Below are positions 6,422 to 55,886 of a stretch of 64,000 bases of DNA, piece after piece (within the stretch, counting starts at the first letter, position 1; each line of letters begins with the position of its first letter). Location of the stretch: positions 124,001-188,000 of IMG/VR virus record IMGVR_UViG_3300024999_000030; one strand, given 5' to 3'. The translations under genes and the position numbers were made by a program. The notes under the pieces are model-generated. The model was not told the origin of the DNA, searched no databases, and saw only the letters and a list, made by a program, of their open reading frames with translations.

Positions 6422-8083
6422 ATGAGTACGCCCAAGAAAGTATATCTTAAAGAAGAAGCTCAGCGACTTTTAAGTAAAGGGGTAAATACAATTACAGATG
6501 TGGTGGCCTGCACTTTAGGTGCTCAAGGCCGAGTTGTAACTATTGACCGTGGCCGTTATGGTACTACCGTTACAAAAGATGGGGTCACTGTCGCCAATGA
6601 AACTATTTTGGAAGATCCAGCTGAAAATATCGGCGCCGACATGATAAGAACCGCCGCTAATACAACAAATGACACCGCTGGAGACGGGACCACCACCGCA
6701 GCAGTCTTAACTAGAGAAATCTATAATGAGGGTCGAAGGGCCATGGCAGTAGGTGTAAACATTGCCGAATTAAGACGTGGCATTAACGCCAGTAAGGATG
6801 TTGCTGTTTCAGAATTAAAACGTTTAGCTACTTCCGTGAAAGATGGTGATATTCAAAAAATTGCCACTATTTCTGCTAACAATGACGATATCACTGGGGC
6901 TATTATTGCAGAAGCAATTAACAGGGTTAATAACGGTGTAGTAACGGTTGAGTTATCTCAGACAGCTGAGACTTATTATTCTTTAACAGAGGGCTTCCAA
7001 TTTGACAAAGGATTACCAACACCATATTTTGTAACTGATCAAATTAGAAATATTACTGAGTTTGAAGATGCATATATTCTCATTACTATGCATAAATTGA
7101 TGGCCGCTGAACCATTGGTCAATTTATTGAATGAAGTTAGTAAATCTAAAAAACCTCTTTTAATTATTGCCGATGGCTTTAGTAATGAAGTTCTTCAAAC
7201 GCTTGTCTATAATAAAATGAAGGGCGCCGTACAAGTTGCCGCTGTAAGCACCCCAGGCTATGGTGAGGCTAAAATTCAACTTTGTGAAGATATGGCAGCT
7301 TTAACTGGAGCACAATTTGTAGACCCAGAGGTAACTAATATTAATGATGTTTCTTTGGCATATTGTGGTCAAGCTAAAAAAATCATTTGTACTAAATTTA
7401 GCACCACGATTATGGGTGGGGGCGGAAACAAAGAAGTAGTGGATCAACGTATGGATAGAATTAAATATGCGTTGGCTCAAGAGCATTTGGCTCCCTTTGA
7501 AATTGATCAACTTAGAGATAGATTAAGTAGATTGCAGGGCGCCGTTGCGGTTATTCATGTTGGTGGTCTTAACGAAGAAGAAGCGAATGAAGCTAAAGAT
7601 AGAGTGGAAGATGCTGTTCATGCCACTCAATCTGCTATGGAAGAGGGTATCCTTCCAGGTGGTGGTCTTGCTTTCCTATATGCTTCCAAGGCAGTGGAAA
7701 CGGCAATGGAAAATCAAGCACATAAAGATGCTAAAATTGGATTTGATATTATTCGGAAGGCTTTAAAGGCCCCATCGCGTCAAATTGCAGCAAATGCTGG
7801 CTTAGACCCAGCGACAGAAGCGGTCACTAAAGCACTAGAGGCTTATCCCCAGCAATATGGTTATGGTTTTAATGCTGCTACGGAACAATATTCTAATTTA
7901 ATAGATGATGGGGTAATTGACCCAGCAAAAGTGAGTAGAGCAGCTCTAGAAAATGCCGTATCTGTTGCCCTGCTTATGCTTACCACGGACGCTCTCCTTG
8001 TAGAAACTGCATTTAGAGAAGACGATCCTAGAGTGGATAAAGTGGCTCGCCCAAGGGTTATGATGCAAAAACACAATCAATAA
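6422..8083 (+). CDS. groEL: Group I chaperonin GroEL (phage-encoded)
   Basis: TLGAQGR, TKDGVTVA, AGDGTTTA, GFQFDKG, EEGILPGGG, GVIDPAKV motifs; no GGM tail. Confidence 0.96.
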   Translation: MSTPKKVYLKEEAQRLLSKGVNTITDVVACTLGAQGRVVTIDRGRYGTTVTKDGVTVANETILEDPAENIGADMIRTAANTTNDTAGDGTTTAAVLTREIYNEGRRAMAVGVNIAELRRGINASKDVAVSELKRLATSVKDGDIQKIATISANNDDITGAIIAEAINRVNNGVVTVELSQTAETYYSLTEGFQFDKGLPTPYFVTDQIRNITEFEDAYILITMHKLMAAEPLVNLLNEVSKSKKPLLIIADGFSNEVLQTLVYNKMKGAVQVAAVSTPGYGEAKIQLCEDMAALTGAQFVDPEVTNINDVSLAYCGQAKKIICTKFSTTIMGGGGNKEVVDQRMDRIKYALAQEHLAPFEIDQLRDRLSRLQGAVAVIHVGGLNEEEANEAKDRVEDAVHATQSAMEEGILPGGGLAFLYASKAVETAMENQAHKDAKIGFDIIRKALKAPSRQIAANAGLDPATEAVTKALEAYPQQYGYGFNAATEQYSNLIDDGVIDPAKVSRAALENAVSVALLMLTTDALLVETAFREDDPRVDKVARPRVMMQKHNQ

Positions 8084-8143
8084 TTGGGCACACCTATTAA
8101 TAAAACAAATTTAAAGTAGCATTTTAAAAAGAGAGGTACGCCC

Positions 8144-9541
8144 TTGAGTGCACGTAAAAATAGCTATGCATCTTATGACGATTTTTTACTAGATATTGGT
8201 GAATATTTTATAAGTTTAAACGCTGCGTTGTTTATGGAAACAGTACCTCCAACTGAAACAGCTAAAGCCTCTAAGAGAATAAAAACTTTAACGGGTTTAG
8301 TTGTTACGGCAACTACAGTTTCTACCTCAGCTAAAAAATTAAGAGTAATTGCGGAAAGGGAATATATAAAAATTGCAACAAAAATGAAAAGATCTTCAAA
8401 TCTTCCCACCACACAACTGATGTGTGATTTTCAATTATCAGAATTAGAAATGCTTATTCTTTTATATTTGTCATGGCAGGAAGTTGGGACTGACAATATT
8501 TTTATGTATATTAAAAATATCAGTCCAGTCCTTAAATTCTTTTCTAATAATGAAAAAGATGTAGTGTCTCGTTTAAAACTATTTAGTAATGATGCTAAAA
8601 TGATTAATGGCGGATTGTTGCATATCCAACAAAGTGAAAGTGCGCCTCTTGGGGCTTCTGATTTAATGGTGTTGGAGCCACTTAGAGAAATGTTAGCGGG
8701 GATGACGGATTATGATTTAGCGGTATTGCAACAAAAAAAGAAATGCAAAGACACATGTCAAACCGCTGGAACCATTACTCTTATAGCAAAAGAAGCTACT
8801 ATGGAACAGCTTCATATGACGGAAGCATATTTAAAACACTATAAAAAGATTTTTGTGGATTGGGCACTTGGGGAATCCATTCCATATGGAAGTGGTATGG
8901 TTATTTTATTTCATGGCCCCCCTGGCACAGGGAAAACCCTCGCCGCCCGTTATTTAGCCCAACGTTGCAAAAAAGAATTAATTGTAGTGGATTATGCTGA
9001 TTTACTTAATAAATATGTTGGTGAAACAGAAAAGAAAATTAAAGAAATGTTCAAACGCGCTGCAAAATCTGGAGCCGTGCTCCTAATTGATGAAGCTGAT
9101 AGTGTGATGCACGCTAGAGGCGATGATTCAAAGAGTTGGGAAATTTCACAGGTCAACGTATTGCTTCAGTGTGTGGAAGCTCATGATGGTGTGGTGATTT
9201 TAACTACCAATCGTGAGGAATTATTAGATAAAGCGTTAATGCGTCGTGTTATTCTTAAAGTAGCATTTGAAATGCCAGATGCTAGTCAACGCGCCAAAAT
9301 ATGGCAAACGATGCTTAAAGAGCAAGCAATTGATAAGGCGGTTGATTTTAAAATTTTAGGTGAAGAATTTATATATGCCGGTGGTAATATTAAAAATGCT
9401 GTGTTATTGGCGGCTATTCTTGCTGCCAACAAAGGTAAAGAGAAGATTGGTATGGATGATTTACGTGAAGCCGCTATGTTAGAAAAGAAAAAAGTTACAC
9501 CGAAGGGTTCTAAAATTGGCTTCATGGGCGAATCAAAATGA
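8144..9541 (+). CDS. AAA+ ATPase with large N-terminal domain (SpoVK/Vps4/Afp15-like)
   Basis: Walker A FHGPPGTGKT, KYVGETEK, Walker B LLIDEAD, ILTTN, Arg finger ALMRR, GGNIKN. Confidence 0.88.
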   Translation: MSARKNSYASYDDFLLDIGEYFISLNAALFMETVPPTETAKASKRIKTLTGLVVTATTVSTSAKKLRVIAEREYIKIATKMKRSSNLPTTQLMCDFQLSELEMLILLYLSWQEVGTDNIFMYIKNISPVLKFFSNNEKDVVSRLKLFSNDAKMINGGLLHIQQSESAPLGASDLMVLEPLREMLAGMTDYDLAVLQQKKKCKDTCQTAGTITLIAKEATMEQLHMTEAYLKHYKKIFVDWALGESIPYGSGMVILFHGPPGTGKTLAARYLAQRCKKELIVVDYADLLNKYVGETEKKIKEMFKRAAKSGAVLLIDEADSVMHARGDDSKSWEISQVNVLLQCVEAHDGVVILTTNREELLDKALMRRVILKVAFEMPDASQRAKIWQTMLKEQAIDKAVDFKILGEEFIYAGGNIKNAVLLAAILAANKGKEKIGMDDLREAAMLEKKKVTPKGSKIGFMGESK

Positions 9542-10398: not shown

Positions 10399-13300
10399 GT
10401 GGGATATAATAGTAAGGATATTAAGGTCCTTAAGGGCCTGGATCCTGTTCGTCAACGCCCTGGTATGTATATTGGAAACACGGATGACGAGACAGGAACT
10501 CATCAAACTGCATTTGAAATTATAGACAACGCAATAGACGAGGCCATGAACGGCTATGCCGATTTGGTCGCTGTCACCGTTCATGCGGATGGAAGTCTTT
10601 CTGTGCGCGATAATGGTCGGGGCGTGCCTGTGCAGATGCATCCTACCGAGAAAAAATATGGTGTTGATCTTGTTTTTACAGTACTTCATGCTGGCGGAAA
10701 ATTTGACGAACAGGCATATAAAACATCTGGTGGTCTTCACGGCGTGGGAGCCTCAGTGGTCAACGCTCTTTCTGAATGGCTTAAAGTTGAAGTAAAAAGA
10801 GATGGCAGGAAATATTTTAGAGAATATGCTAATGGTAATCCTATTGGCGAACTTCAGGATCTCGGTCCAAGTAAGAAAACCGGCACTATCGTTACATTTA
10901 AACCGAGCGTTAAGGTGTTTAGAAAGCCGGAATTTAGCTTTGAAATATTAAAAAATAGATTAGAAGAATTAGGCTTTCTCAATGAAGGCGTTGCTATTAA
11001 ATTAACCGATGAGCGCACCAATGAGGAATTTGAAGTTGGTCATAATGACGGTTTGAAACGTTTTGTGGAGAGAATTGAACCGAAGGCTCAAATTCTCACT
11101 CCTCTTATCCAAGTGTCTAGCGCCAAAGGCGAAAAAGTACGAGTGCGTTGTGCATTGCAGTGGAAGTTAGATTTTGATGGAGATAGGCTTCTCGCTTTTA
11201 CTAATAATATTCGTAATGGTGACGGCGGTACTCATGTAGTTGGTTTTAAAAATGTTTTAACACGATGTCTCACTAAAGCCCTAACGGGCAAAAAGGGAGC
11301 TAGCCTCGTTACTGGGGATGATGTTCGTGAGGGCCTTGTTGCTATTATTGATGTTAAAATGAGTGACCCTAAGTTTTCGTCTCAGGTTAAGTCAAAACTC
11401 GTTTCCGAAGAAGCTCGTACGGCATTGGAGAATATGTCTGGGGCCTTTGAAGATTATTTTGAAAAAAATCCAGCTCATTTAAATCGCGTAATGCAAAATG
11501 CCGTGAGAGCTGCGGAATCTAGGGAGGCAGCTCGTAAAGCAAGAGATTTATCTCGAAAGAAAAACGCAATGGATATCGGAGTTCTTCCTGGTAAATTAGC
11601 GGATTGTCAAAGTAAAGATCCAGCCATTAATGAATTATTCTTAGTTGAAGGAGATTCAGCCGGTGGAACAAGTAGACAGGGTAGGGATAGAAAATTTCAA
11701 GCGATTCTTCCATTGCGTGGTAAGGTAATCAACGCAGAAAAAGCGACCCTACATAAACTATTGGCAAATGAAGAAATTAAATCACTCATTGCTGCAATTG
11801 GAACTGGTATTGGAGAAAATTTCGATATTGAGCGTTTAAGATATCATAAGATTTGTATTATGACTGACGCCGATAGTGTTACTGGAGACACCCCCTTAAT
11901 GGTTTTTAATAAGGAAACCAAAGAAATGAAACTATATCGCACAGACGATTTTATTGATAATGTTTGTACGGATATTTCTAAATATCAGATAGTGGCATGT
12001 GATTTGAAACACAAGTCTTTTGGTTTTAGAAACTTACAACAAGTGTATAAGCATCCAAGTAAAAAGCAATTATTTAGAATTACAGATGACAATGGACATC
12101 ATGTAGATGTAACATCAGATCATAGTGTTTTTGTGTATCGGAAAGAAACAAGGTCATTTGAAGCCGTATCTACAGTGCGTCTTTCTGTCGAGGACCAACT
12201 CGTTTCATCTAGAGCTATACCAGATATTACAACAACAGAAATGAAAATTAATCCATATTTGCTTGGTTTATTTATTGGTCATGGGCAAGTAGATAGTCAA
12301 GGTCATTTCAAATTACTGCGTAGTACGAGATTTAAACAACGGGCTGTGGATTTCAACAGCTTACCAGCAGTAAAAATTACCACTACAGATAGAGTAGCTC
12401 AAACAGAAACGTTGGAATTTACCAATAAACGTATTTCAACAATGATATCCAGTTTTAATATTACTAAATCTGAATTACCAAATTGTTTGTATACGGCACC
12501 AACGGCCCAAAAATTAGCTTTTCTGCGTGGTTTATTGGAGTCATGCGCAGCGGTGATGGTTCACCAGGGTATATCTATTTGTGCTGAAGATTCATTGGCT
12601 ACTGGGTTGATCTATCTACTGAGACAATTTGGAGTGTCTCCAGCTATTCTTAGAGGTGGGGCCAAGGCATTAATCAATATTAAAATTAAAGATATGGCAT
12701 TCATTGCTGGGGCCTGGGATCATCATAAAGCAGTTAAAGATTTTGGTGATCTTGTTGCTCCATCCAAAGAATATGAATTGGTAAAAATTAAATCAATTGT
12801 GGAGCTTCCTCAACAACCATATGTTTACGATTTGTCTGTGGATGTGGATCAGAATTTTGTGGCAGGAACGGGAGCAACTCTCTTACACAACACCGATGGG
12901 GCCCACATTAAAACGCTATTGTTGACTTTCTTTTATCGACATATGCCAGAGTTAGTGAAAAAGGGACATATTTATATCGCTCAGCCGCCACTATATCGTT
13001 GTGTTATTCGTGGTAAGGTGCATTACATTTTGAACGATGGGGAATTAAGATTGTTTAAGGTAAAAGAAAAATATGGATTACTTAGAACTTATAAAAAGGG
13101 TAAAAAATATGCTTTTCCACAAGAACAAATTTTTGATATGCCAAAGGGAACTCTTTTATATTCAGATAAACTACTATTTGATGTTCCCATAGAAGATATT
13201 ATGAAACTAGTTACAGAACCAAGAGAAGATCTTAAGCTTCAGCGGTTCAAAGGGTTGGGAGAGATGGCAGCAGAACAATTAGCTGAAACCACTCTAAACC

Positions 13301-13443
13301 CATCTAGCAGAAGAATGTTACAAATTAAAATAGAATCAACAGAAGCTGCAGATAACATGATTACAACTTTGATGGGTGATGACGCAGAGGCTCGTCGCAC
13401 CTTTATTATGGAAAATTGCCAATTCGCTACTCCAGACGTGTGA
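10399..13443 (+). CDS. gyrB: DNA gyrase subunit B interrupted by an intein
   Basis: RPGMYIG, EIIDNAIDE, GGLHGVG, VEGDSAGG, PLRGK, IMTDAD|intein|TDGAHI, QRFKGLGEM. Confidence 0.95.
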   Translation: MGYNSKDIKVLKGLDPVRQRPGMYIGNTDDETGTHQTAFEIIDNAIDEAMNGYADLVAVTVHADGSLSVRDNGRGVPVQMHPTEKKYGVDLVFTVLHAGGKFDEQAYKTSGGLHGVGASVVNALSEWLKVEVKRDGRKYFREYANGNPIGELQDLGPSKKTGTIVTFKPSVKVFRKPEFSFEILKNRLEELGFLNEGVAIKLTDERTNEEFEVGHNDGLKRFVERIEPKAQILTPLIQVSSAKGEKVRVRCALQWKLDFDGDRLLAFTNNIRNGDGGTHVVGFKNVLTRCLTKALTGKKGASLVTGDDVREGLVAIIDVKMSDPKFSSQVKSKLVSEEARTALENMSGAFEDYFEKNPAHLNRVMQNAVRAAESREAARKARDLSRKKNAMDIGVLPGKLADCQSKDPAINELFLVEGDSAGGTSRQGRDRKFQAILPLRGKVINAEKATLHKLLANEEIKSLIAAIGTGIGENFDIERLRYHKICIMTDADSVTGDTPLMVFNKETKEMKLYRTDDFIDNVCTDISKYQIVACDLKHKSFGFRNLQQVYKHPSKKQLFRITDDNGHHVDVTSDHSVFVYRKETRSFEAVSTVRLSVEDQLVSSRAIPDITTTEMKINPYLLGLFIGHGQVDSQGHFKLLRSTRFKQRAVDFNSLPAVKITTTDRVAQTETLEFTNKRISTMISSFNITKSELPNCLYTAPTAQKLAFLRGLLESCAAVMVHQGISICAEDSLATGLIYLLRQFGVSPAILRGGAKALINIKIKDMAFIAGAWDHHKAVKDFGDLVAPSKEYELVKIKSIVELPQQPYVYDLSVDVDQNFVAGTGATLLHNTDGAHIKTLLLTFFYRHMPELVKKGHIYIAQPPLYRCVIRGKVHYILNDGELRLFKVKEKYGLLRTYKKGKKYAFPQEQIFDMPKGTLLYSDKLLFDVPIEDIMKLVTEPREDLKLQRFKGLGEMAAEQLAETTLNPSSRRMLQIKIESTEAADNMITTLMGDDAEARRTFIMENCQFATPDV
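11875..12891 (+). mobile_element. 339-aa intein (Ser1...His-Asn, +1 Thr) with degenerate LAGLIDADG endonuclease
   Basis: Block A SVTGDTP; block B VTSDHSVF; block F VYDLSV; block G LLHN/T; HEN-like blocks YLLGLFIGHG and FLRGLLESCA. Confidence 0.92.
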
Positions 13444-13450
13444 GGATAAA

Positions 13451-14500
13451 ATGTCGACTATCAATAAAATTATAGGTAAAGGACTAACATTTGATGATGT
13501 CTTGTTAGTGCCCGGTTATTCTGAAATATCTTCCCGTAATGATATTACGGTTAAAGCTCAGCTCCATCCCAATCTCTGTTTAACTGTGCCGGTTATTTCA
13601 GCTAACATGGACACAGTAACGGGTGAGGAGATGTGCCGGATTATGCATAAACATGGGGGATTGGGAATTCTACATAGGTTTGCTCCAGAAGCAGAATTAA
13701 TTTCAATTGTGGAGACCCTACAAGAAGATAAGGTTAGATTTGGTGTTTCCGTAGGGGTAAACCTAGATGATGAAAAGCTTTTTAATTTATATTTATCTCG
13801 TGGTATAAATATTTTTTGTGTAGACGTAGCCCACGCTCATCATCAAAAGGTTAGATATCGTTTGAGACACATTAGAAATGCTAAAAAAGATGCTATTATT
13901 ATTGCTGGAAATGTAGCCACTCTCGATGGAGCTAATTTTCTTGCAGAAAATGGAGCCGATATCATTAAAGTCGGGATTGGCCCAGGTTCGCTGTGCTCAA
14001 CCCGCATTATGACGGGTTGCGGAGTTCCCCAGCTCACCGCTATTATTGATTGCGACGTTATTAAACAGAACCATCCTCATGTTAAAATTTTAGCTGATGG
14101 TGGAATTCGTTATCCAGGTGACATCACTAAGGCAATCGCGGCAGGGGCTGATGCGGTTATGATTGGTGGTATGTTAGCTGGCACAGAACAAACTCCAGGT
14201 TTAATCATTAAGAAGGGCACACCATCTAGGCCATTACTATATAAACGCTATCGCGGTTCTGCTTCCATGGAAGCTAAATCGTCTTCTGGTCGAGATATTA
14301 AATTTATAGAAGGGGTTTCAACAGATATTCCATATAGAGGGGACGCTTCCCTCGTTATTGATGAGATTATAGATGGATTAAAATCTGGGTGTTCTTATGT
14401 TGGAGCTAGTAGTTTATTGGAATTACAGGCTAAGGGCAGATTTGTAGAGGTTACACATGCAAGTTATGTTGAGGGAACTCCCCACGGTTCAGGCTATTAA
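13451..14500 (+). CDS. guaB: IMP dehydrogenase/GMP reductase family enzyme, no CBS domains
   Basis: [56 protein letters not shown] vs GMPR cannot be resolved by eye (flap YRGSAS). Confidence 0.8.
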
Positions 14501-21635: not shown

Positions 21636-22652
21636 ATGAGTTATTATGAAGCTTTAGGTGTTACTAAAGAGGCAACGGCGGAAGAAATTAAAAAGGCATA
21701 TAGGGAAGCCGCTCTTAAGTATCATCCCGATAGAAATCCTGGTAACCAAGAAGCTGAAGATAAGTTTAAAGTTGTTTCTGAAGCGTATTCTATTTTATCT
21801 GATGTTGAAAAACGCAGACAATATGATATGGGTGGCCAGAGCTATGATTTAAATGATCATGAAATGTGGGACGCTTTTTTTCCAGGTTTCCGCCCTAATT
21901 ATGGAGCGCCCGGCTCTCATAGAAGAAATTGGCCAGCAAGAGATGTGGAAACTGTTCTAAATATTACTTTAGAAGAGGCTTTTAGTGGAGTTGATAAAGA
22001 AATTTCATATCGAGCGGACATACCATGCTCGACTTGTAATGGGACCGGAGATTCCTCTGGGTCTAGAGCACAATGCTCTCATTGTCGAGGAACTGGAATG
22101 GAAAGCTCAAGACGAGGCAATTTTGTTGTACAGCGTGCCTGCCCCATATGTGGTGGAGATGGAAATTCTATCACTAATAAATGTGGTAAATGTAATGGGA
22201 GAGGCAGTATTAAAGAAGATAAAATTGTATCTGTAACTATTCCCGCCGGAATTCCAAATAGGGCTCAAATGAGAGTTCCAAACCACGGTGGAACTGGTGG
22301 CTTCCCAGGTCATGAAACTGTGACTGGAGATTTATATGTAAATATTATCATTCAACCACATCCAGAATTTATAAGGCAGGGAGAAGATATTAATTATCAA
22401 TTAAATATCTCTCCAGCTAAAGCTACTCTTGGTGGTACTGTAGATTTAAGTAATTTTATGTTTCATGGAACTGTGAAAATTCCGCCAGGAACCGCCAGTG
22501 GAACTAAATTTGCCGTTCGAGGAAAGGGAATGCCAAAATTTCAAAATAAAGGTCGGGGAGACTTTTATTATGAAGTAATAATTGTTCCCAAGACCCAGTT
22601 AACTGACAAGGAAACTGAACTATATCGACAGTTATTGGAGATGGAACAATGA
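21636..22652 (+). CDS. dnaJ: Type I DnaJ co-chaperone
   Basis: J domain with HPD; four CxxCxGxG repeats; C-terminal IPAG and GKGMP motifs. Confidence 0.95.
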
Positions 22653-24687
22653 AGGAATGGAGAATTTATAAGGCAGATTTTAGTATAGATCCTAATCTTG
22701 GGGTACTTGTTTCCTGTTCTTATTTTGTTACTCAAGATGTAAGAGATATTCTGAAAAGTTTAAATTCCTTTTTTCTACAACAACTTAGGAATTTGGAGGC
22801 AACGGAAGATATTGGTCATTTTGTTTTGGTAAAATTATCTGATTCTGAAAGTAGTTTAATAAACAACGTATTTCCTATTTATGAAATTAAAACAATTGAA
22901 AATGACACGCCAGTAGTTTATTTTACTAATCATTTAGGTTGGGTAAAAGATTTGAACGTACAAGAAATTAGTTCCATTAAGTTAAAATATTCTGATGTCC
23001 ATATTATATATGAAGGAAAGGAGTAATCATGATGGGATCTATGAGTGCGGCTTATGAAAACAGACCACCGTCCAACAATACTGAATCTTTATCTGATCAA
23101 ATTAGTCGAAATTTAGATATGATAACGAGTAAAACCTTTAGTAGCGTAGTCGATTTATCTAATGAAGAGTTTGAATTAATGCAACGTAGTTTTATGTCAA
23201 CTTTAGGTGATGTTGAGCAATCTACTAACGCATTGTTGCATTATTTTAATGATATGGATTTTTATGAAGATTGGGCTGCCGCATTGTTAGCTGCAACTGA
23301 TACTGGATTAGAATGTGGTAGTAGTAACGTCCCAACTGAATTTATGCAAATCAAACATGCCTTATCTGGTGTTTTAATGTCTATTCAACTTTTTCATATT
23401 ATTGCTGATAAGGCTTCCAATTCAACTTTAATTAAAGACACATTAGATGCTCGTTCTCGTTCAGAATTGATTTCAGAGGCCAGAGATCGAGTGGCTGCTT
23501 TGCATAATGGCAATAAATATAATGGGTTGTTGAAAACGGCAAATTATGAATCTGAAAAAGTCAATATTTCTAAAATTTATCTCGAAAGAATGAATTTTAT
23601 TAGTCCAATCATTCTATTTTTTCCAGCATGGTCCGTTACAGCTAATCACAGTTTAAATTCTCAATTGAGGAACCTAATTGCTTCAGCTAATGCTAAGGGA
23701 ACCGTATCAATGATGCCTGACGCCCAAAGACTTATACAATTTATTAGTTTGGCTTCTAGAGTTAATTTTGACATATCTAATGTATCTCTTCAGCTTATAC
23801 GCTGGACAAAATAAAATAAGGAGAAAGAAAAATGGAAGAAAGTTTAGGTATTAAACAAGCTATTGCAGCGGTAGATGAGGCTATTAATGATACTAAATAT
23901 ATTGTATTAAATCCACCTCCGAAGCCAAAGGTAACTATGGCCCATGCTCTAACCCGTCGCCTTAATCGCGCTTTAGAACTACAGCGTAGAAATAAAGTGG
24001 CCTTTGCTAAACGTAGGGCTAAGAATAAAGTAGCCCGTATTAGTCGTAGGATGAATAGGAGTAAATAATTATGGGTATTCCACGTAAGATTAAACTTGGA
24101 AAGGTTCGCATACGCATTCCCCTCCCAAAGCGTTCTGGGAAAACTATGCTAACTAAATTAGATAAAAAGAATCGAGAACGTAAGAGCGGTTCTGAGTACC
24201 TTCAAGAAAGCCAAGAAGAGTGGGAAGTAGGTGAGGAAGAAGATGGAACTGAATCCGAGTGATAAAATGAAACTTGACTCTTTAATGAAAGAGAGAATGA
24301 AGCTTTTTAGTATGCTTTCTCAAGCCAAAGAAATGGCTTTAGATCCAGTTTTTGTTCGGCTTGCTAAGTTAGGTATGCCAGAACAAAGCACATTGGTAAG
24401 CGCTTATCAACAACCCTTATCTAATACCAAACTATATCCCATCGTTGAAATTATTCCTGAAATTGAACGGAGATTAATAGAGAATGAGCAGCTCATCAAC
24501 GCACTTGTGCCCGCTGTGTAAATCACAATGCTATATTTCAACTATAGTTGAAAGTAAATGTGTTTTATGTGACGAAGACTTAATTTATAATGGCAAACCT
24601 TTACAACTTTGTCATAAATGCGCAGTCAAATTTCAACGCTGCGCTTTATGTTCTGTGAAATTAATTGAAATTGAACAGGATAAATAA
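22649..24687 (+). CDS. Run of six hypothetical ORFs, including two short K/R-rich proteins (23832-24068, 24071-24262)
   Basis: ORF track; tight coupling. Confidence 0.55.
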
Positions 24688-24808
24688 GTGGAGAATAAGG
24701 AGCGAAAATGTATTGGATGCTCCCGGCTCCTACCTGTAGATTTCTTATTTTCACTTTGTGATGATTGTTTTATATATTATTTAGATTTTATTAAAAAGGG
24801 GCGTAACA

Positions 24809-25579
24809 ATGGGGCATAGTATAGTGCCAGAAGCTGAAGCAATTTTAGATCAATCGTTTCCCGTGTTAGATAAGGGGTTTATACGTTTAGTTGATTATAA
24901 TGGTAGCGATAGTCGTATTGTTCAGGCTGCTAGAGTCTCATATGGAAATGGTACTAAAACCATGCGTGAAGACGCTAAGCTTATTGATTATTTATTGAAA
25001 CATGAGCACATGTCGCCATTTGAGATGGTTAATTTTACATTCCACCTTAAGTTGCCAATTTTTGTTTTCAGGCAAATGGTTAGGCATCGAACAGCGCGAT
25101 TAAATGAGATTTCTGGTCGATATTCTGTACTGGAAGATGAGTTTTATGTCCCCAATCCAGGTGATATAAGATCACAAGATACTGTAAATAAACAAGGAAG
25201 ATCTGAAGAAATGCTGCCAGATGCACTTTTTCAATGTGCTGATTTTCATGATGAACAGATTAGGGACTATGCAGAATATAAACAGCGTGTAGACGCCGGA
25301 ATGGCCAGAGAATTAGCTCGTATCAACCTACCGGTTTCATTGTACACACAACTGTATTGGAACATTGATTTACGAAATCTGTTTAATTTTCTCAAATTAA
25401 GGCTGGATGTTCATGCTCAATATGAAATACGTGAATATGCAAGAGTTCTTATGGATTTAGTACAAAAGGTATCACCTATGGCCTTTGCTTCGTTTGAGGA
25501 ACATATTCTATATGCTATTAAGTTAAGTAGGTCAGAGGTGTTAGCTGTGGAAGGAAATTTTAAAATTGAAGAAAAATAA
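24809..25579 (+). CDS. thyX: Flavin-dependent thymidylate synthase
   Basis: AARVSY, HMSPFE, RQMVRHRTARLNEISGRY, LKLRLDVHAQYEIR. Confidence 0.95.
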   Translation: MGHSIVPEAEAILDQSFPVLDKGFIRLVDYNGSDSRIVQAARVSYGNGTKTMREDAKLIDYLLKHEHMSPFEMVNFTFHLKLPIFVFRQMVRHRTARLNEISGRYSVLEDEFYVPNPGDIRSQDTVNKQGRSEEMLPDALFQCADFHDEQIRDYAEYKQRVDAGMARELARINLPVSLYTQLYWNIDLRNLFNFLKLRLDVHAQYEIREYARVLMDLVQKVSPMAFASFEEHILYAIKLSRSEVLAVEGNFKIEEK

Positions 25580-26237
25580 TTTTAATATTTATGAAACTTG
25601 GTATGGTCGACGATTTAACGGCGCTGTAAGAAACATGAGAAGACAAATAGAAGCAGAAGAAGATAGAAAGATTATGGAGCTTTTGGATGCAGAAGTAATG
25701 GGTCTCAAAAAAGATGAAAGTAAGGATGGAGATGTATAATGAGAGTCCATATGATTATTTCTCATGTTAAATTAATTAAAGACGCAATTCCTAAAGACAA
25801 CGATAATTTTGCAGATATGGAAGTAAAGAGAAAGCTATGGGATAAATGGTCTAGAACAATAGACGTGGATGCTAGTATAGTTCCCCGTGCTGGAGATGCT
25901 GTTTATAATATATTTGATAATGGTGTGAGTTATATGGTTGCTACTGTTTCATGGGACTATCAATCGGAAACCCCCACAATTCGCGTTTTATTAGCGGATA
26001 TTCAAATTGAATTAAAATGAAAAAATTGAACGTTAAATATACATGGAAAATAAATAATCCACACAGGAAATATAGTGGCTCTACTCTTTTTGGGGTACAT
26101 TATTGCATTTTAAAACATAAACCAGTACACCCAAAAGAGGGTGATGCTTTAATTGATGTCGAAAAGTGGGAAATAGAAATATTCTTATTTGAAGAATGGC
26201 GCCCACTTGATTTTAATTTATTAGGAGGGCCTCCACT

Positions 26238-26492
26238 ATGACAAGAGAACCATCTTCTTCTGAAGTTTTAGCTCTTAGAGAGCGTTCAGGCGCTGGTATT
26301 ATGATTTGCAAGAAAGCCTTGGAGGTTTGTAATGGTGATTTTCTTTTAGCGGAGGGATATATCAAGTATTATGGTTGTGCCATCAACGTTCGCCCTAAAG
26401 AGGGGGAAATTGCTTCTGAGGCTTACGATAAATGGGTAATGGAAAAGGCTCAAGAGTGGAAAGATCTTAAATTAAAGAAGACTGTAAAGTGA
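26238..26492 (+). CDS. Stand-alone EF-Ts N-terminal (UBA-like) domain protein
   Basis: VLALRERSGAGIMICKKALEVCNGDFLLA vs EF-Ts [29 protein letters not shown]. Confidence 0.75.
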   Translation: MTREPSSSEVLALRERSGAGIMICKKALEVCNGDFLLAEGYIKYYGCAINVRPKEGEIASEAYDKWVMEKAQEWKDLKLKKTVK

Positions 26493-26833
26493 TTGCACCT
26501 ATTATTGTGGTAATAATTGTGCTCATAATTGGCTTCTTTGTTGACAAACTAGATAAACCAAACTCTCCTATTATTCTTACTTGGGCTTGGTTTTAAGGGG
26601 CAAGGATATCGTAAAAGCTTTCCAGTTCAAAAATAAGGAACACAAAATGGCAATTAAAGAATCATCAGATTCATCTTTTAGGAGTGTGTATCGTACTTGG
26701 CGTCGGCATGGTTTCAAACAGGTTATAGAATCGTATATTATACAACGTCCCAATATTTTAGTTAATTCGGTCTTTTCTACTTGGCAATCTTATATAATTA
26801 AAGAAATCACATATTACAAATTACAAAAATAAA

Positions 26834-26857
26834 GAAGGCCGCCACTTGGCGGCCTTC
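26834..26857. terminator. Bidirectional terminator hairpin at a convergent strand switch
   Basis: gaaggccgcca-ct-tggcggccttc. Confidence 0.75.
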
Positions 26858-26893: not shown

Positions 26894-27874
26894 TTATTGC
26901 TGACTTAATTCATCTCTTAATCTAATTAAAACAGATAAAGCTAAATCTAATTTAGTTGCCTCTGTTCTTTTTCCATTTTCATCTAAGGTACCAGCTGTCA
27001 CATATAATAAATTAAATGCTCTTTGATTAAATTTAGTTGTCCAACTTGGGTATCTCACATCAATATCATCAGTAATCGGAACAACAGGCGTAGGCTTCTT
27101 TTTTACTCTTTCAATTTCCACATCATCTGTAGGTTCACTGATTGCTTTATCTAAAATTTGCCACGCTAACATTAAATCCGCTTGATTTTCTTCTGGTTCA
27201 TCTTCGCTAAAAATAGCGCTTTCTAAGTCTGATATTTGAAATGGAGAAAGGGTTAAAAGGAAATCTTTTAATTTTTTCGTGTTGGTCGAGCCCAATTCTC
27301 TCACTGCGGTTAACACTAAATCTACAACATTAATATCATTATCTATTTTATCTGCTTGAACTAATATTTTCACGGCAGCATCTAGTGTATTGGCTTTTTC
27401 ATATTCCCCACACTTATCTAAAGAATTAGATAAATTAATTAACCATCCGGCGATATTCACATTCTTCTCCTTTAGCAAGTCTTTGTTTTTCATCAAATCT
27501 ATGGTGCTTATAAGCGAAGAAAGTCTGTTTATTTCATTCTGAGTCATATATTTAAGTTTTTCATTTAGATGTTTCATGCTCTGGGCTCGCAGAAAACTAA
27601 GATATTTGAGTTGATATCTCCGCTTACCATCCCGTAGGACGTCTTTAACGGCCTCAGGATCGGCGTTAGAGATGATTTTCACATTCCCCACCGCCTCCAT
27701 TAGTTCCTCTTGGCTGAGGACCGCTGAATGGTCCCCCCTATGTAAAAGATTATAGGTCAACTTCTCCCTAATTACCTCTAGTGTGCCCGCCAATTGGAAA
27801 ATAGCCTCTTCTAAATCAGTATCGTGCATGCCGGGGAGAGTAGGTTGAGTGGGAGAAGTTAAAGATGACTTCAT
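26894..27874 (-). CDS. Hypothetical protein with repeated LD..G....A..LD helical motif
   Basis: LSNSLDKCGEYEKANTLD and AGTLDENGKRTEATKLD. Confidence 0.65.
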   Translation of the reverse strand: MKSSLTSPTQPTLPGMHDTDLEEAIFQLAGTLEVIREKLTYNLLHRGDHSAVLSQEELMEAVGNVKIISNADPEAVKDVLRDGKRRYQLKYLSFLRAQSMKHLNEKLKYMTQNEINRLSSLISTIDLMKNKDLLKEKNVNIAGWLINLSNSLDKCGEYEKANTLDAAVKILVQADKIDNDINVVDLVLTAVRELGSTNTKKLKDFLLTLSPFQISDLESAIFSEDEPEENQADLMLAWQILDKAISEPTDDVEIERVKKKPTPVVPITDDIDVRYPSWTTKFNQRAFNLLYVTAGTLDENGKRTEATKLDLALSVLIRLRDELSQQ

Positions 27875-43903: not shown

Positions 43904-44374
43904 CTATCTCTTCATCTCTAAAAGAGCGGCTAGTTCCAAGAAAGTAAGGATACTGGTTTCATTCATATTAGTATTCATCATAATATCACAATCTATAAGG
44001 ATATAAGTTCCCCGAGAAGCATCAGTATATAGATTAGTATTAGGAATGGCATCTTTTAGTATTCTAGTTTTACTCCATGGGCACTCAGAACAATTTAATA
44101 TATTATTATCCGTAAGTATACAAGTCGGATTCTTTATATCATTATGCCGAGTAATACTTCCACGTGCAGCTCTCCATTTATGATCTGGATTAACTATTTC
44201 TTCTGCTTGTTTAAAGTGTTTAATATACTGTCTATTGATGTTATTAAGAGAATTACACCACTCTTCCCCTTTGTTTTCTTCAGTTACACATGATTCAAAG
44301 TCGCGTATGTATGAATGTATACGGTAGAGGGTTGAGTCGATAATGTAAGATTTATGTGTTGACTGTTCGCTCAT
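43904..44374 (-). CDS. Divergent Cys4-family paralog
   Basis: C...CSECPW...C...ILTFLELAALLE. Confidence 0.55.
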   Translation of the reverse strand: MSEQSTHKSYIIDSTLYRIHSYIRDFESCVTEENKGEEWCNSLNNINRQYIKHFKQAEEIVNPDHKWRAARGSITRHNDIKNPTCILTDNNILNCSECPWSKTRILKDAIPNTNLYTDASRGTYILIDCDIMMNTNMNETSILTFLELAALLEMKR

Positions 44375-44389
44375 TATGGCCTCACTATC

Positions 44390-44418
44390 AATATAATTTG
44401 AACGTTGTTAATTGTCAA
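44390..44418 (-). promoter_or_regulatory. Promoter TTGACA-N17-TATATT
   Basis: Exact spacing; heads the long leftward transcription unit. Confidence 0.72.
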
Positions 44419-44574
44419 GTAAGAGTCGATGATAATTAAATAAGGATAATAATGGGGCCGCCGTTAAGAGGATACTGTATAGGATTGATATGGGTATTGT
44501 ATGGATATTGGGTATTTAAACAGGAGGTTATAAAGAGATCGGTGTAATAATGTAAAGGCTTATGAATACTGAAT

Positions 44575-44890
44575 AAGTGAGTCATTTATGACACAGTATA
44601 ATAATAAGATAAGTGAAATAATATAGAGAGGAGTTAGGAGAGAGTTAGGAGAGAGATACTGAGTTGTGTCTACAAAAATGACACATGTGACTTAAATGAC
44701 ACACTGGCGTATAATAGATAAGTGAAATTTATAATGAAATGACATTAAGATAACTATTAGATACTGGTAAAAGTGAGTCATTTATGACACACTTTACTAA
44801 TAGTATGAGCGGTTAAGTGCGATAATATGAGATAATATGAAGAATATATACTGATAATCAACATGTGACAAAAATGACTCACTTTCACTT
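44575..44890. repeat. Iteron-like cluster: aagtgagtcatttatgacac x2 (44575-44594, 44771-44790) plus an inverted variant (~44860-44889)
   Basis: Identical 20-mers with internal palindrome gtcat-tt-atgac, in an AT-rich non-coding divergent region. Confidence 0.75.
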
Positions 44891-45088
44891 AAGTTGTGAA
44901 AATACTACCCCCCAGACAATAAGAGTCTGAGGTAATATCAGTATCTCCCCGCCCTAAGTCTAAGCCAAGCATCAAGCGACTTACACTTGTAAAGAGTTTG
45001 GCCAGTATCAAAGTATAGCGTGACGCTGTGTCATGCTAGATACTGGCGCGAGTGTAAGAGACTTAGATACTGGCCAAAGGAGTTAAAG

Positions 45089-45481
45089 ATGGCTAACATC
45101 TTGAGCATGAAGGGCTTGGGCGTCAAGGTTACCGTCAAGGTAATCAAGAAGCACAAGTTCGTGGACGGTTCTCCCGAGCTGTCCCACAAGGGCGAGTACA
45201 CTCTCACCCTGTCGGCGGGGTCCAAGTCCGTCTCTACTAAGTGCGTGGGGACGGGCGAGTTGTTCGCCAAGTGCTACGCCATGATGAGCGTGCACTTCCC
45301 CAAGAGCTATGCTAAGTTCCAGGCCATCAGCAAGGTGGAGAAGGCCGCGAACAAGGCGAAGGCGAAGGCGAACCACAAGGCGAAGAAGGCGGCGGCCAGC
45401 GGCGTGGACTTGAAGAGCCTCGCCGCACTCCTCAACCGGGCGAAGAAGGGCAACGGTAAGATGCTGGCCCTGTTCCTCTAA
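45089..45481 (+). CDS. Highly basic Lys/Ala-rich protein, paralog 1
   Basis: RBS aaggag; GC-rich codons; aligns by eye with 56703-57104. Confidence 0.8.
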   Translation: MANILSMKGLGVKVTVKVIKKHKFVDGSPELSHKGEYTLTLSAGSKSVSTKCVGTGELFAKCYAMMSVHFPKSYAKFQAISKVEKAANKAKAKANHKAKKAAASGVDLKSLAALLNRAKKGNGKMLALFL

Positions 45482-45659
45482 GCCAGTATCTCATCATCTT
45501 TCCAGTATCTTATTATAGATACTGACACAATCTAAAGTAACTCATGGGTGGGTTAGTATAATACTAACCCTCTCTGGTCAGTATTCTCCCACCTGCGCGT
45601 GGTACTGACTGCTGATAGATACTGGTCTATCACAACGGGAGAAGATAAGGAGGAGTAAG

Positions 45660-45830
45660 ATGGGACAAGCTAGACAAAGGGGAACCCGGGAACAGCGTGT
45701 CGAACAAGCCCAAGGCCGCAAAGTCGGGGTGCCGGTTAACCTCACGGCACAGCTCCAGCGTAACTTCAGTAACAAAAGGAGTTTCCGTGAGTCGTTGTTC
45801 ACTCGGCTCACTCGTCTCTTTCGCTCTTAA
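45660..45830 (+). CDS. 56-aa basic protein, not in the ORF track
   Basis: RBS aaggaggag; MGQARQRGTREQR... Confidence 0.65.
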   Translation: MGQARQRGTREQRVEQAQGRKVGVPVNLTAQLQRNFSNKRSFRESLFTRLTRLFRS

Positions 45831-46027
45831 GGGGCAGCATCTCAATCATCTGCCTTGACCTCAGTACGTTGAAGTGCTCTGAGGCTAAGTAGGACTAGGA
45901 CTCTCTTATAGTAGAGCCAGCCTACCCCCAAATATAGCCAGTATCCAGAGCTGGTCGATCAGTATCTTAATTACTTAGATATTGGTCGGCCATAATGTGG
46001 GTACTGTATATAGTGGTGTGTGTTTGA

Positions 46028-46199
46028 ACCATACCACATATAGACAGAAAGATGGGTTTTGAGAAAAATGAGATCTAATACCTATAGTTAGTTAGTATCT
46101 CATTGTATAATACTGGCGCTATAATTAAGTATGTCTATATGTAGTGGTGTTAGTAAAGACCATACCACATATAGACAGAAAGATGGGTTTTGAGAAAAA
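46028..46199. repeat. 41-bp direct repeat (46028-46068, 46159-46199) with a partial third copy at ~46223
   Basis: accataccacatatagacagaaagatgggttttgagaaaaa seen twice. Confidence 0.9.
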
Positions 46200-46317
46200 A
46201 CAGTTGTGGTGTGTTATAAAGACACTACCACATATAGTAGTGTAACATAACAGCGCCAGTAATAAAGATACTAGCTAAACCATATGATACTGGATAAACC
46301 AACGGAGGGAAACCACA

Positions 46318-49300
46318 ATGGCTTATCATAAGTCTCAACGCCGCAATCTCAAACCTACAACCATCAGACAGTATCATTATGCTGTAAGCCGGCTTCTCAA
46401 TGCTTGCCCTCCCAATCTTCTCATACAAGTTATGAAAATGATTCGGGCAGGAGCAAAGACTTACCCAGTGTCTAAGATTCAATCTTTCATGGCCGGTAGT
46501 GGATTCTACATGTATTCACGAGAGATTAACAAAGCCATCAACGCTATGCAATGGGGATTATGCCCGCCTCAATATCGCATCTCCAAGAATAATCGCTGGT
46601 ATTTGGATACATTCCCTCAAGAGCCTGGACCGGTTGCTTATGCTGCCATGGAAACGGTCAGTATCAATCATCCAATTACTGCCCCCACACTTCAACCTGC
46701 CATGAACATTGTGTAAATAAAGATACTGGTCTGTAATTCTACCAGTATCTTACCTTCGCCGCCTAGTTACTTTGCATAGTGCAGGGAAACTTCGGCGCGA
46801 TCATAGGCTAATACAAGGAGGACAATATGGATTACGGGTAGCTAAGCTCAAACCTTAATTCAGTGTCTAGAGATGGCGGTCAGTATCGTCCAGTACAAAT
46901 GATTATAAACACTGGGATACTGGCCGTCACACTGTAGATACTGGACAAAACTTTCAATAGGAGGAGGCTACAATGGCCTACACACTATATAATCCACCGA
47001 CTAAGTGGTGGAAAAGGCAACACAGTATCACAATAACTATCTGGCCTAAGTGGTTAGCTCAGAAGCTTTGCAATCACTCTGCACCTAAACCTTCATGGAT
47101 TACTTCAAACACTTGCTACTCTTGCCCGGACTGTTACACTCTTATGATTCCTCCAGGAGCAGTCACCACGAAGGAATAGGGAGCGAGGTGAACGATGAAC
47201 GAGCAACCCAATAGTTCCATCTCAATCGTCCGTTACTCCAGAGATGGCTTCGTGGCTAAACGGCAGTCCAAACATATGTATAATGTTTGGCATGAGCTGT
47301 TTAAGTTTAATAGCCATGACATGCCAGAACATCTTCGTGGTGTCAGCGTAGAAGCACACCATAAGATCGTCCCTTTCTATCGTGAACACCTCGCTGATTT
47401 TAACTGGGGCATCTGGGTATTCATAGAGGGACACGATAACATGATGTCTCTCAATCATCTGCACGGTCAAGATAGGATGGGGCTTAAGCGTTGGACTGCT
47501 GTAATTCCCAGTAACACAGAGGTTTACGGTGTGGGGTGGGATGTCATTGTCTCTATTAGTGATTTCATTCCACAGATGTTCGGCTGCTTCATACCCAAAC
47601 GAAACATTCCTCTCATCACGGATATCAAGTGTGACGATGAATGTGATGTGGAGTTAGAGCTAGAGAGGTATGACTGGGAGCGTGAAGAAGAGAATCGCAT
47701 GCTCCGTTGTGGGTATTAGAAAGGAGGTGTCTTAAGTTGCCAGTCTTCATCGTTCAACAACTCGAAGGCGTCCACTGGTTTGATTCCGGTGATCATGGGG
47801 CCTGTCTGACGCGAATCCTTTCCAGCCAGAGAGAGGGGCTGGAGTTTGCGAGGGATGTTACCAGACGAACACAATTCGAAACCCGAGTAGTGGAGACAGA
47901 CAAAAACCGAATTGTTTACAACGTCTGGTCTCCGCACGCTCCATAACAATCCGTTCTTCACAGAGTACTCCTGTTAAAGGGAGTACTCAATCCCGTCAAT
48001 GTATACTAGCTGGTGGGACGGGGTAAGAGCACAATATATAGTAGTGCTCAGGCTAGTATGCCACAACATATAGGAGAACACATGAACATCAGTCGGCGTA
48101 AGAGGGGTTACATAAATCAGAGAGGAGGATAACAATGAATAGGGCTGATGTCCTCTTGATACTGGACGAAAAGTTTGCCAAGAAGGTGACGGATGAATAC
48201 AAGAAACGCACTGGATACAGTAATGTAATCGGTAGCGTTTCTAGCAATATGAAAGTCTTTATCCCCATCATTAAAGATATTCTTGATGATGGGCTTCGTG
48301 TACAAGAAGAAAACGAAAGAGAGGTGCGACATGATAAAAGTTGAACCGATGGAACCGCTGGACACAGAAAACTACGCCGTGCCCTTGAATCCTTTTCATC
48401 AAGACATATACAGTATGGGGACGACGCTGGGGACAAACGTGACGGTGATGTACGGAAATCATACTCACACTCATCAACCTTACATCATCGTTGTTAACCT
48501 GGATACTGGCGAACGAATCAAGATCGCTTTCTGAAAGGGAGGTGTGTCATGAACGAAAAGGAAAAGAACAGGATGCGACGATTATTGGAAATGGCTTATT
48601 TGTTTGCATGGGGTCCAGATGGTACGGCTGACCGCAGAGATGAATGGTGGGAACTTAAAGCTTTACTTCCCAACGTAGGAACGATGTGTTATGGTGGTAA
48701 TGGTAAATTCCGATGGGACGAATGAGCCAAATAGGTTCAGTTCTTTTTCATAAGGAGGCGTGCCATGGAACCGATCTTTGTTAACAATTGGGGCGAAATA
48801 CGAGGCGGTATCTCAGTGGATGAAGTCTTGAAGGGGGATGGTAAGCTAGCTGGCTTTACTGTCTCTGGCAAGAATCAAGATGGTAAGGAGTTCTGCATTG
48901 ACTTCTTCGTTCATGTTGGTGCCAAAAACATCACCATCACTTGCAGCTAAGGGAGGAGGAACTACATGGAATGGAAAGTCGTTGATACTGGCGATGAAAT
49001 CACCATCGTTCCTGAAACCCGCAATCTCCCCGGCAAAGTTCTTTTCGTCGGAACCTCAGTGGATTGCGATGAATATCTATATGAACTGAGCAACGACGAA
49101 TAACCTAACCCCATAAGGAGGCTCAACATGGAATGCGGATATCTAATTGCGTGGGTCGGTCCTTGTAAAAGCCAACCATCGGACGACAGTTCGTGCCGAT
49201 GTGACAAACACAAGGACAAAGTCTGTGCATCTTGTGGTGCTCCAGCCACTCAGGAATGCGATACGACGGGACAGTTCGTTTGTGGTGCTCCTCTCTGCAA

Positions 49301-50004
49301 CGATTGCGAGCACACCATCGCAGAAGACGGAACCAATGGTGGGGTTGGTTTCGTTCAACTCTCTCCCCTCCCACCGGGCTACAAGCCACACTGCAAGAAA
49401 ACGGAACAGAAATTCACCCCCTGGTTCATGAGGCCACTTTCGGAGAGCTAAGGAGGCTCGACATGCCACTAAAACCTGGCGATCGTTTACCCCGTGCTAA
49501 GGTAGATATCATGGACCTTAGCGAAGTGATGGATGAGGATATGAGGGGTAAGTTGGACACCCTTCGCACCCTCACTCCTCCTAAGCCCAACCTGTTTCAA
49601 CTGGAAGGAGGACCGGCGGATGGATAGAAAAGATCGAATCATCCAGCGCCAGAACAATGAAATACTGCTAATGGAGCTTCGTCTAGAGGAACTGGAAAGG
49701 ACCCTCGGTGAAGCGGTTAATCTCATCCAAGAAATCCACACAGAGATGATGACCGAGCTTCATACCTGTGCTCTGTTCGATGATAAGGTCTGGGTCATCG
49801 ATCAAGAATTGGCAATGGCCCACGCTGCCTTTGAGGAGGATATGGCAAAGGGCCTTGAGACACTTCAAGACGATGAAAGGTCAGATGGCGTACTGGATTC
49901 ATGAAGCAGAGCAGGGAGAGGCATCTGGATATCTTGGTCCCGATAAGAGTGAAGAGTTTCTCAGTAGGATCCTTAACAAGCTGGATGTGCCTCCAGAGGA
50001 TTAA
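46318..50004 (+). other. Cluster of ~14 short hypothetical ORFs with strong SD sites, including Cys-rich Zn-finger 49128-49451
   Basis: aggagg-type RBS before nearly every start. Confidence 0.6.
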
Positions 50005-50054
50005 ACCAGTATCTCTATAGTCTTAAAGATACTGGCGAAGTAATAGATACTGAG

Positions 50055-50920: not shown

Positions 50921-50943
50921 GAATAATATGAAAGGAGGCGGCT

Positions 50944-51593: not shown

Positions 51594-51609
51594 CGAAAGG
51601 AGGCTTCAG

Positions 51610-55748: not shown

Positions 55749-55809
55749 GTTAATCTCCTTTGAACACACTATATACTGTTTTATTAATATAGCGTGTTCA
55801 AATCTTTTT

Positions 55810-55885: not shown

Positions 55886-55886
55886 T

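Follow-up and report, generated by a model that had tools for sequence, protein, structure and literature searches.

The 84-aa protein analyzed here, named mini EF-Ts, was found to consist of a homolog of the three-helix N-terminal domain of the translation elongation factor EF-Ts, followed by a conserved tail with a fourth helix. Together with its relatives it forms a previously undescribed and unmodelled phage family with the architecture "TS-N + fourth helix". The original prediction had missed this family; mini EF-Ts is a member of a widespread and conserved group of phage proteins and not a one-off truncation. Its most likely function is that of a docking module for helix D of the host EF-Tu that modulates or adapts this factor, a prediction which we consider quite possible but still short of probable.

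Genomic location of the mini EF-Ts gene

The window, i.e. the whole stretch of 64,000 nucleotides that was analyzed, comprises bases 124001-188000 of a 332,730-bp IMG/VR virus record, which is rated complete by CheckV. The source is a groundwater metagenome, and the same DNA is present in groundwater metagenome runs. The genome contains 29 tRNA genes, and a Cpn60 chaperonin, an AAA ATPase, an intein-containing GyrB, an enzyme of the IMPDH/GMP-reductase family, DnaJ and ThyX are encoded upstream of mini EF-Ts in the window. Due to the genome size, the tRNA set and the gene content of the window, the source is regarded as a jumbo phage.

The mini EF-Ts gene (26238-26492, + strand, stop codon included) starts with ATG. 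It is one of the last genes in a long + strand array that comprises early/metabolic as well as small genes. A Shine-Dalgarno sequence AGGAGG (26223-26228, + strand) could be read 9 nt upstream of the start codon. The gene overlaps with both of its immediate neighbours. The stop codon of the upstream 74-aa gene (26017-26241, + strand), for which no Pfam match was found, overlaps the start of mini EF-Ts (ATGA), and the GTG start of a downstream gene for a hydrophobic peptide of 35 aa (26489-26596, + strand) overlaps its stop codon (GTGA). Between the end of the array and a convergent gene on the − strand (26894-27874), a GC-rich palindromic hairpin was identified (26834-26857), which is likely a terminator. 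Its stem of 10 bp contains 8 GC pairs, and a T-run is present on the − strand. The scan for sigma-70 promoters around mini EF-Ts gave no signal above the shuffled controls.

An ortholog with 71% identity is encoded on a 173-kb phage contig (L005), where the order of the genes near ThyX is the same and the 74-aa and the 35-aa neighbours are kept as well. The comparison of the two orthologs resulted in a dN of 0.19 and a pS of 0.96, the synonymous sites being saturated. From this low dN at saturated synonymous sites it follows that the mini EF-Ts gene is under strong purifying selection. The peptide that follows the ortholog (L005 8252-8422) resembles the 35-aa peptide; it is a transmembrane peptide and ends in "TW.WF".

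The chaperone genes of the array (window 6422-9541 and 21636-22652, + strand) encode a Cpn60/GroEL-like protein of 553 aa, an AAA ATPase of 465 aa and a full DnaJ of 338 aa; L005 likewise encodes a DnaJ and additionally shows a weak HSP20 match. In the phage GyrB homolog (1,014 aa; window 10399-13443, + strand), the intein (Intein_splicing, residues 527-831) is inserted between the Toprim and the C-terminal domain. Genes of nucleotide metabolism are those for the IMPDH/GMP-reductase-family enzyme (window 13376-14500, + strand), whose ORF, with the start that is listed, shares about 70 nt with the end of gyrB, and for the flavin-dependent thymidylate synthase ThyX (24809-25579, + strand). Two adjoining small Cys-rich ORFs of 67 and 43 aa lie just upstream of ThyX (window 24484-24819, + strand) and contain several CxxC pairs of zinc-ribbon-like appearance.

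In the last 20 kb of the window (44001-64000), the G+C content jumps to 0.43-0.51, after 0.32-0.38 in the sequence before. This region consists mostly of short ORFs with no clear Pfam matches and contains three tRNAs, those of the window being specific for Met, Lys and Leu and located within 55810-56473. Elsewhere in the genome (14708-14783), a tRNA with the anticodon CTA, which reads TAG, was labelled tRNA-Pyl by ARAGORN. A recoding of TAG was considered on account of this tRNA but is not supported: reading TAG as sense brought no specific gain in ORF coverage and no specific ORF lengthening, and whole-genome recoding is therefore not evident.

Homology to the N-terminal domain of EF-Ts

The similarity of mini EF-Ts to the N-terminal (TS-N/UBA) domain of EF-Ts spans residues 6-63 overall. 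With the profile TIGR00116 ("tsf"), residues 7-62 were aligned to profile positions 6-60 (E 1e-7, 31.5 bits), and residues 4-60 of E. coli EF-Ts (1efu_B) were aligned with an E-value of 1.2e-6, which confirms the close match to the EF-Ts N-terminus that had been proposed for this gene. The Pfam model EF-Ts_N was matched with an E-value of 0.0036. The three-helix TS-N/UBA domain itself covers residues 7-46 (26256-26375, + strand; LRERSGAGIMICKKAL) and includes the helix1-loop-helix2 hairpin. It is homologous to the N-terminal domain of EF-Ts and retains the motif LRE.(T/S)GAG..CKKAL..(C).GD of that domain. Over residues 10-46, the identity to 18 bona fide EF-Ts N-domains is 46-54%, which is about equal to the closeness to its own family.

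The alignment with TIGR00116 ends at profile position 60, so that the core with Asp80/Phe81 is absent from the 84-aa protein. The EF-Ts core model PF00889 had no match in the whole 332,730-bp genome, searched in six frames. Thus, the original prediction was right in that only the N-terminal domain is present and in that the core with the Asp-Phe motif is missing. The score of 31.5 bits is far below the TIGR00116 cut-off for full-length equivalogs (104.05 bits). By this score and by the absence of the core, mini EF-Ts is not an EF-Ts, whereas it does belong to the TS-N/UBA fold. In comparison to EF-Ts (tsf; TIGR00116; PDB 1EFU chain B), it shares the homologous three-helix domain (EF-Ts residues 1-54) but lacks the core with its subdomains N and C, Asp80/Phe81, the coiled coil and the C-terminal module. 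Unlike EF-Ts, it carries a family-specific linker and a fourth helix.

Since the Asp80/Phe81 wedge of the EF-Ts core, by which GDP/Mg2+ is expelled, is missing, no nucleotide exchange by the EF-Ts mechanism is expected. A split EF-Ts, with a further part encoded elsewhere in the phage genome, was also searched for, and none was found. No EF-Tu-like GTPase is encoded in the phage genome. Since neither an EF-Tu nor an EF-Ts core is encoded by the phage itself, mini EF-Ts would have to find its partner among the host proteins.

Conservation and distribution of the family

Six relatives of mini EF-Ts were detected by a word-indexed search. The exhaustive profile search resulted in 2,076 matches at E<=1e-3 and in 71 clusters at E<=1e-10. 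The best matches are mainly proteins of 66-105 aa which span the full profile, tail included; the lower-scoring matches are ordinary EF-Ts N-termini.

The conservation was determined from an alignment of 69 family proteins that are 30-71% identical to the query. An EF-Ts-like block comprises L13, R14, T/S17, G18, G20, a hydrophobic residue in position 21, C/A24, K/R25, A27 and L28. The family-specific block consists of D34, L37, A38, G40, Y41, L42, Y44, G46, C47, A48, I/V49, W66, A71 and W/Y/F74, with W66 found in all 69 proteins, A71 in 68 and A38 in 66. The family motif LLA.GYL(K/R)Y.GCA(I/V) follows the GD turn, and W, A and an aromatic residue (position 74) are found in the C-terminal helix. 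Mini EF-Ts is a typical member with respect to its length (family range 66-105 aa), the motif, the invariant W66/A71 and the aromatic residue in position 74.

In the Pfam analysis of the 69 members, EF-Ts_N was matched by 26 and each of the generic UBA models by 2-4; there is no dedicated family model. A weak match to PF00542 (L12 C-terminal domain; E 0.0028) was found in two of the 69 members, and no match to this model for the protein of the window. PHROGs contains no family for the mini EF-Ts proteins, and PADLOC gave no match for the window protein and four other proteins with the family domain. In the ESM Atlas, mini EF-Ts is found among clusters of unnamed proteins of 58-78 aa, some of them labelled Uroviricota. 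Some source pipelines label members as "translation elongation factor EF-Ts".

The megablast search of the mini EF-Ts region against deposited and cultured phages yielded nothing. For five family members, the tblastn search of 50,697 deposited phage records gave weak matches at best (E 8e-5 to 1e-3), which cover the UBA part only (53-69% query cover). Three of these fall within annotated tsf genes of bacterial contigs that had been mis-filed; the other two come from human faecal samples and are located on "Bacteriophage sp." contigs that carry no annotation. At the sensitivity of tblastn, the family is practically missing from these records. No family member was found in limited scans of representative bacterial genomes for prophage copies. 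The family is nearly confined to metagenomic phages and prophages.

Predicted structure and the family-specific tail

The structure of mini EF-Ts was modelled with AlphaFold2 using an alignment of 7 sequences (mean pLDDT 89.9, pTM 0.77). Helices were predicted for residues 7-17, 21-30 and 35-44, followed by a long fourth helix (59-82); residues 45-58 have no assigned helix or strand. The first three helices form a compact bundle with a Gly-containing loop 1, as is characteristic of the UBA-like/TS-N fold. In the comparisons with Foldseek and VIA-align, EF-Ts chains from EF-Tu:EF-Ts crystal structures ranked first. The VIA alignment of the model to EF-Ts residues 1-54 had a Z-score of 6.4-7.1 at 45-48% identity. 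The next-ranked structures were the UBA domains of NAC, Cbl-b and HYPK with Z-scores of about 5. The fourth helix aligns to no part of EF-Ts in the structural alignments; all four helices are matched by a small number of predicted proteins of about 80 aa that are viral or uncharacterised (TM 0.66-0.70).

The tail begins with the extended linker "CAINV..." (residues 47-58; 26376-26411, + strand), whose length varies across the family. C47, A48 and I/V49 are conserved in the linker, and roughly half of the members have gaps at positions 54-60. The fourth helix (residues 59-82; 26412-26483, + strand) was modelled as a block with a pLDDT of 88-93 and carries the invariant W66 as well as A71 and W/Y74. 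The tail (residues ~47-84) is thus a conserved, family-defining structural element. The earlier view of an unrelated tail holds in that no similarity to EF-Ts is detectable, but it has to be revised with respect to conservation, which is evident from G46, C47, A48, W66 (69/69), A71 (68/69) and W/Y74.

Mimicry of the EF-Ts C-terminal module by the tail helix was considered but is not supported. The structural alignments cover EF-Ts residues 1-54 only, and a tail-only HMM led to other carriers of the family domain and to no genuine EF-Ts.

The fourth helix and the linker also distinguish the family from other small TS-N proteins. The 59-aa "Elongation factor Ts-like protein" of Sinorhizobium phage phiN3 has an EF-Ts-N-like UBA domain without the tail, and DUF4342 proteins have an N-terminal TS-N domain but lack the family linker and fourth helix (GCA...W....A..W/Y).

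Considering the length of the protein, which covers no more than the initial ~20% of an EF-Ts, and the naming of some members as EF-Ts by the source pipelines, a decaying and functionless fragment of a captured tsf gene was taken into account. This explanation is effectively refuted by the conservation data and can hardly be credited any more. A dN of 0.19 with saturated synonymous sites against an ortholog of 71% identity does not fit to decay, nor does the fact that dozens of divergent clusters agree in length and in their non-EF-Ts tail. The strong RBS, the coupled start/stop overlaps and the confident four-helix model speak against it as well.

The fold resemblance to ubiquitin-binding UBA domains (Z 4-5) and the few members that match generic UBA models could also indicate a true UBA domain, which would bind a bacterial ubiquitin-like protein and act, for example, against a ubiquitin-like conjugation defence. 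However, the EF-Ts matches are clearly above the UBA matches in both sequence and structure, and EF-Ts_N is matched by 26 of the 69 members compared to 2-4 for each UBA model. In addition, no PADLOC match or association with defence was found. We therefore regard this explanation as very unlikely.

Genomic context of the relatives

In all eight fetched contigs with a stand-alone family gene, this gene was located on phage or prophage DNA and was part of an early, replication/recombination or small-gene module. The ortholog on L005 lies on a syntenic jumbo-phage contig. L006 and L007 represent a temperate phage with Cro, S24 repressor and integrase, in which the gene is located between the replication genes and a ResIII helicase, and L008 and L009 are phage contigs rich in small ORFs of the early type. 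A recurrent T4-like locus was identified in unrelated metagenomic phages (L002, 2756-7533; L016; L017) with the order gp32 SSB, UvsX/RecA, three or four small ORFs, the family member and an ATPase-like protein of ~360 aa. For the latter, a P-loop motif is seen in L002, and no Pfam match is on record. In none of the eight contigs was the family gene found in a structural module. No neighbour is conserved across the groups, and thus the family protein appears to act alone.

The closest described phage case is gp247 of Caulobacter phage Colossus, a "truncated EF-Ts" of 98 aa that was proposed, without experiment, as a modulator of host translation (PMC3556154). Like mini EF-Ts, it is a phage-encoded, fragment-sized relative of EF-Ts. 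According to its description, on which this comparison is based, gp247 contains core subdomain N and the equivalent of Phe81 and is therefore the complementary piece to mini EF-Ts.

The idea of an accelerated translation that was put forward for the Colossus protein (PMC3556154) could be transferred to mini EF-Ts, which would then stabilize or activate EF-Tu for phage synthesis together with the 29 tRNAs and the chaperones, no decoy or inhibition being involved. The phage invests in translation and folding, with the tRNA set in the genome and Cpn60, DnaJ and the AAA ATPase in the same array. On the other hand, the nucleotide-release residues Asp80/Phe81 of the core are absent, no exchange activity is known for the isolated N-domain, and other family members belong to small temperate phages without a set of tRNAs or chaperones. 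A role as a positive helper of translation is therefore considered improbable.

Fusions to a HipA-type toxin and other domains

A complete family module was identified at the C-terminus (residues 429-500) of a bacterial kinase toxin of the HipA type (P0033, 520 aa). The protein consists of Couple_hipA (2-108), HipA_C (151-380), a linker and the family module, which keeps the elements LLAEGYLKY..CAINV and W...KA..Y. The P0033 gene is preceded and overlapped by a HipB-like XRE gene. It was found on three contigs from three samples (L011, 8001-9563; L012; L013) in a bacterial mobile-element context, adjoined by T4SS/T2SS-type (T2SSE) genes. The search for further HipA fusions recovered only P0033 itself. 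With PADLOC, P0033 gave two sub-threshold matches to PDC-M03A (E 0.006-0.009).

Other fusions of the module involve an unknown 200-aa domain, a Zn-ribbon-like N-terminus, transmembrane segments and a tandem UBA arrangement. In Pfam scans of 20 longer profile-matching proteins, which comprised true fusions as well as tandem-UBA and other matches, no further informative domain was found; one EF-Ts_N/short-chain dehydrogenase match among these 20 is probably a chimeric call.

Kinases of the HipA family phosphorylate components of translation, namely aminoacyl-tRNA synthetases and, in early in vitro reports, EF-Tu. The Doc kinase, which is unrelated to HipA, targets EF-Tu as well. Since toxins of the HipA class target translation, a translation-factor docking module on P0033 would be coherent with EF-Tu as the partner of the family. 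By analogy, this single case hints at a function of the module as the substrate-docking domain of the toxin, consistent with the EF-Tu idea.

EF-Tu as a possible partner

In the proposed mechanism, mini EF-Ts would be expressed from the long co-directional array of early/metabolic genes and would bind the G domain of the host EF-Tu at helix D via the retained helix1-loop-helix2 hairpin. The same hairpin would be the one that EF-Ts and the ribosomal protein L7/L12 use for helix D. With helix D occupied, a competition with EF-Ts and the L7/L12 stalk may result, from which the phage might benefit. Alternatively, the conserved fourth helix could act as a second interface that tethers something else to EF-Tu.

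The literature on this hairpin is in line with such a mechanism. In a passage of PMC4739770 that refers to Wieden (2001), helix1-loop-helix2 of the EF-Ts N-domain is given as an EF-Tu-binding alpha-hairpin common to L7/L12, and contacts of L7/L12 helices 4/5 to EF-Tu helix D are reported by Kothe (2004). The C-terminal domain of L7/L12 shares the alpha-hairpin motif reported to bind helix D (Wieden 2001, cited in PMC4739770), while its overall fold and context differ from those of mini EF-Ts.

The hairpin residues R14, G18, G20, the hydrophobic residue 21 and K/R25 are retained in the family, which, judged from the sequence, is consistent with docking to EF-Tu. The N-domain of E. coli EF-Ts reportedly contacts EF-Tu through R12, M19, M20 and K23 (Kawashima 1996; Zhang 1998), the equivalents of which in mini EF-Ts are R14, I21, M22 and K25. 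The positions R12, G16, G18, M19 and K23 (E. coli numbering) are kept across the 69 diverse members. The R12-equivalent is R in 54 of 65 sequences, G16 is G in 56 of 65 and G18 is G or S in 60 of 65; L, M or I is found at the M19-equivalent in 53 of 67 and K or R at K23 in 49 of 69. Position 22, corresponding to M20, is variable across the family, so that three of the four putative contact positions are well kept.

Further points are consistent with EF-Tu as the partner. These are the significant homology to the EF-Ts N-domain in both sequence and model, including the 46-54% identity, the weak L12 matches in two of the 69 members, the fusion in P0033, the early-type contexts in 8/8 contigs and the restriction to a host partner. 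The EF-Tu-binding decoy of the original prediction would be consistent with the retained hairpin, the identity to EF-Ts and the HipA fusion, and is plausible as a hypothesis.

Other observations argue against docking to EF-Tu. The strongest conservation is found in helix 3, the linker and helix 4 (L37, A38, G40, Y41, L42, Y44, G46, W66, A71) and not in the hairpin. TS-N/UBA domains are also present in DUF4342 proteins and in NAC, which are not known as EF-Tu binders, and the HipA fusion is a single case. Moreover, EF-Tu is extremely abundant, and an inhibition by a stoichiometric decoy would consequently need a very high expression of mini EF-Ts. The complex prediction with E. coli EF-Tu, which was folded without an alignment and may not be the EF-Tu of the host, resulted in values of 0.05 and 0.01 compared to a mark of 0.32, which by the rule of the tool itself speaks neither for nor against binding.

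As the main alternative, the EF-Ts-derived three-helix scaffold may have been repurposed and would address another host or phage partner via helix 3, the linker and helix 4, with the hairpin kept mainly for folding. Conservation is highest at family-specific positions (LLA.GYLKY.GCA, W66, A71, W/Y74), and UBA-like folds are generic protein-binding modules. The fusion of the module to partners as varied as a HipA kinase, the 200-aa domain, the Zn-ribbon-like N-terminus and transmembrane segments would fit to such a role, and the complex prediction lends no support to EF-Tu. However, the hairpin with its exposed Arg (the equivalent of EF-Ts R12) is kept among members of only 30-45% identity, and the domain has stayed equally close to EF-Ts and to its own family. 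In addition, W66, A71 and W74 are residue types that pack helix 4 onto the bundle and may belong to the core rather than to an interface. A repurposed scaffold is a possibility to be taken seriously, but we consider it rather unlikely.

EF-Tu in phage-host conflict and significance of the family

If the predicted docking of mini EF-Ts to EF-Tu is correct, an involvement in defence could be considered. The original prediction had suggested a shielding of EF-Tu from Lit, for which no specific support was found. The cleavage site of Lit in EF-Tu, Gly59-Ile60, belongs to the effector region and not to the helix-D face that is covered by the EF-Ts N-domain. We know of no characterised small protein from a DNA phage that is built on the EF-Tu-docking domain of EF-Ts.

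EF-Tu is involved in the conflict between phages and bacteria in several ways: it is cleaved by Lit and by type IV Thoeris, and Avs7 scaffolds on EF-Tu (PMC12803255). Avs7 binds to domains II/III and not to the helix-D face, and Qbeta replicase recruits EF-Tu together with EF-Ts (PMC12803255).

In its widest form, the hypothesis would be that a widespread family of phage early proteins clamps helix D of the host EF-Tu with a captured EF-Ts N-domain and thereby blocks the access of EF-Ts and L7/L12, or recruits a second factor via the fourth helix. This could re-tune translation or weaken those forms of immunity that depend on EF-Tu (Lit, type IV Thoeris, Avs7), and the same module would be the docking domain of a HipA-type toxin. 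Taken as a whole, this scenario is tentative and we would not expect all of it to hold.

Whichever partner is bound, the family at present carries incorrect labels, "EF-Ts" or "hypothetical", in the annotation of metagenomes. If it binds a partner other than EF-Tu, it would be an example of a translation-factor domain that was recycled as a generic adaptor. If it binds EF-Tu, the family would provide a compact natural ligand of helix D and a new class of phage factors for host takeover or anti-defence, as well as a clue to the target of the unusual HipA toxin. Mini EF-Ts, with its putative function deduced from homology and context, is a clean candidate for a phage factor that addresses EF-Tu.
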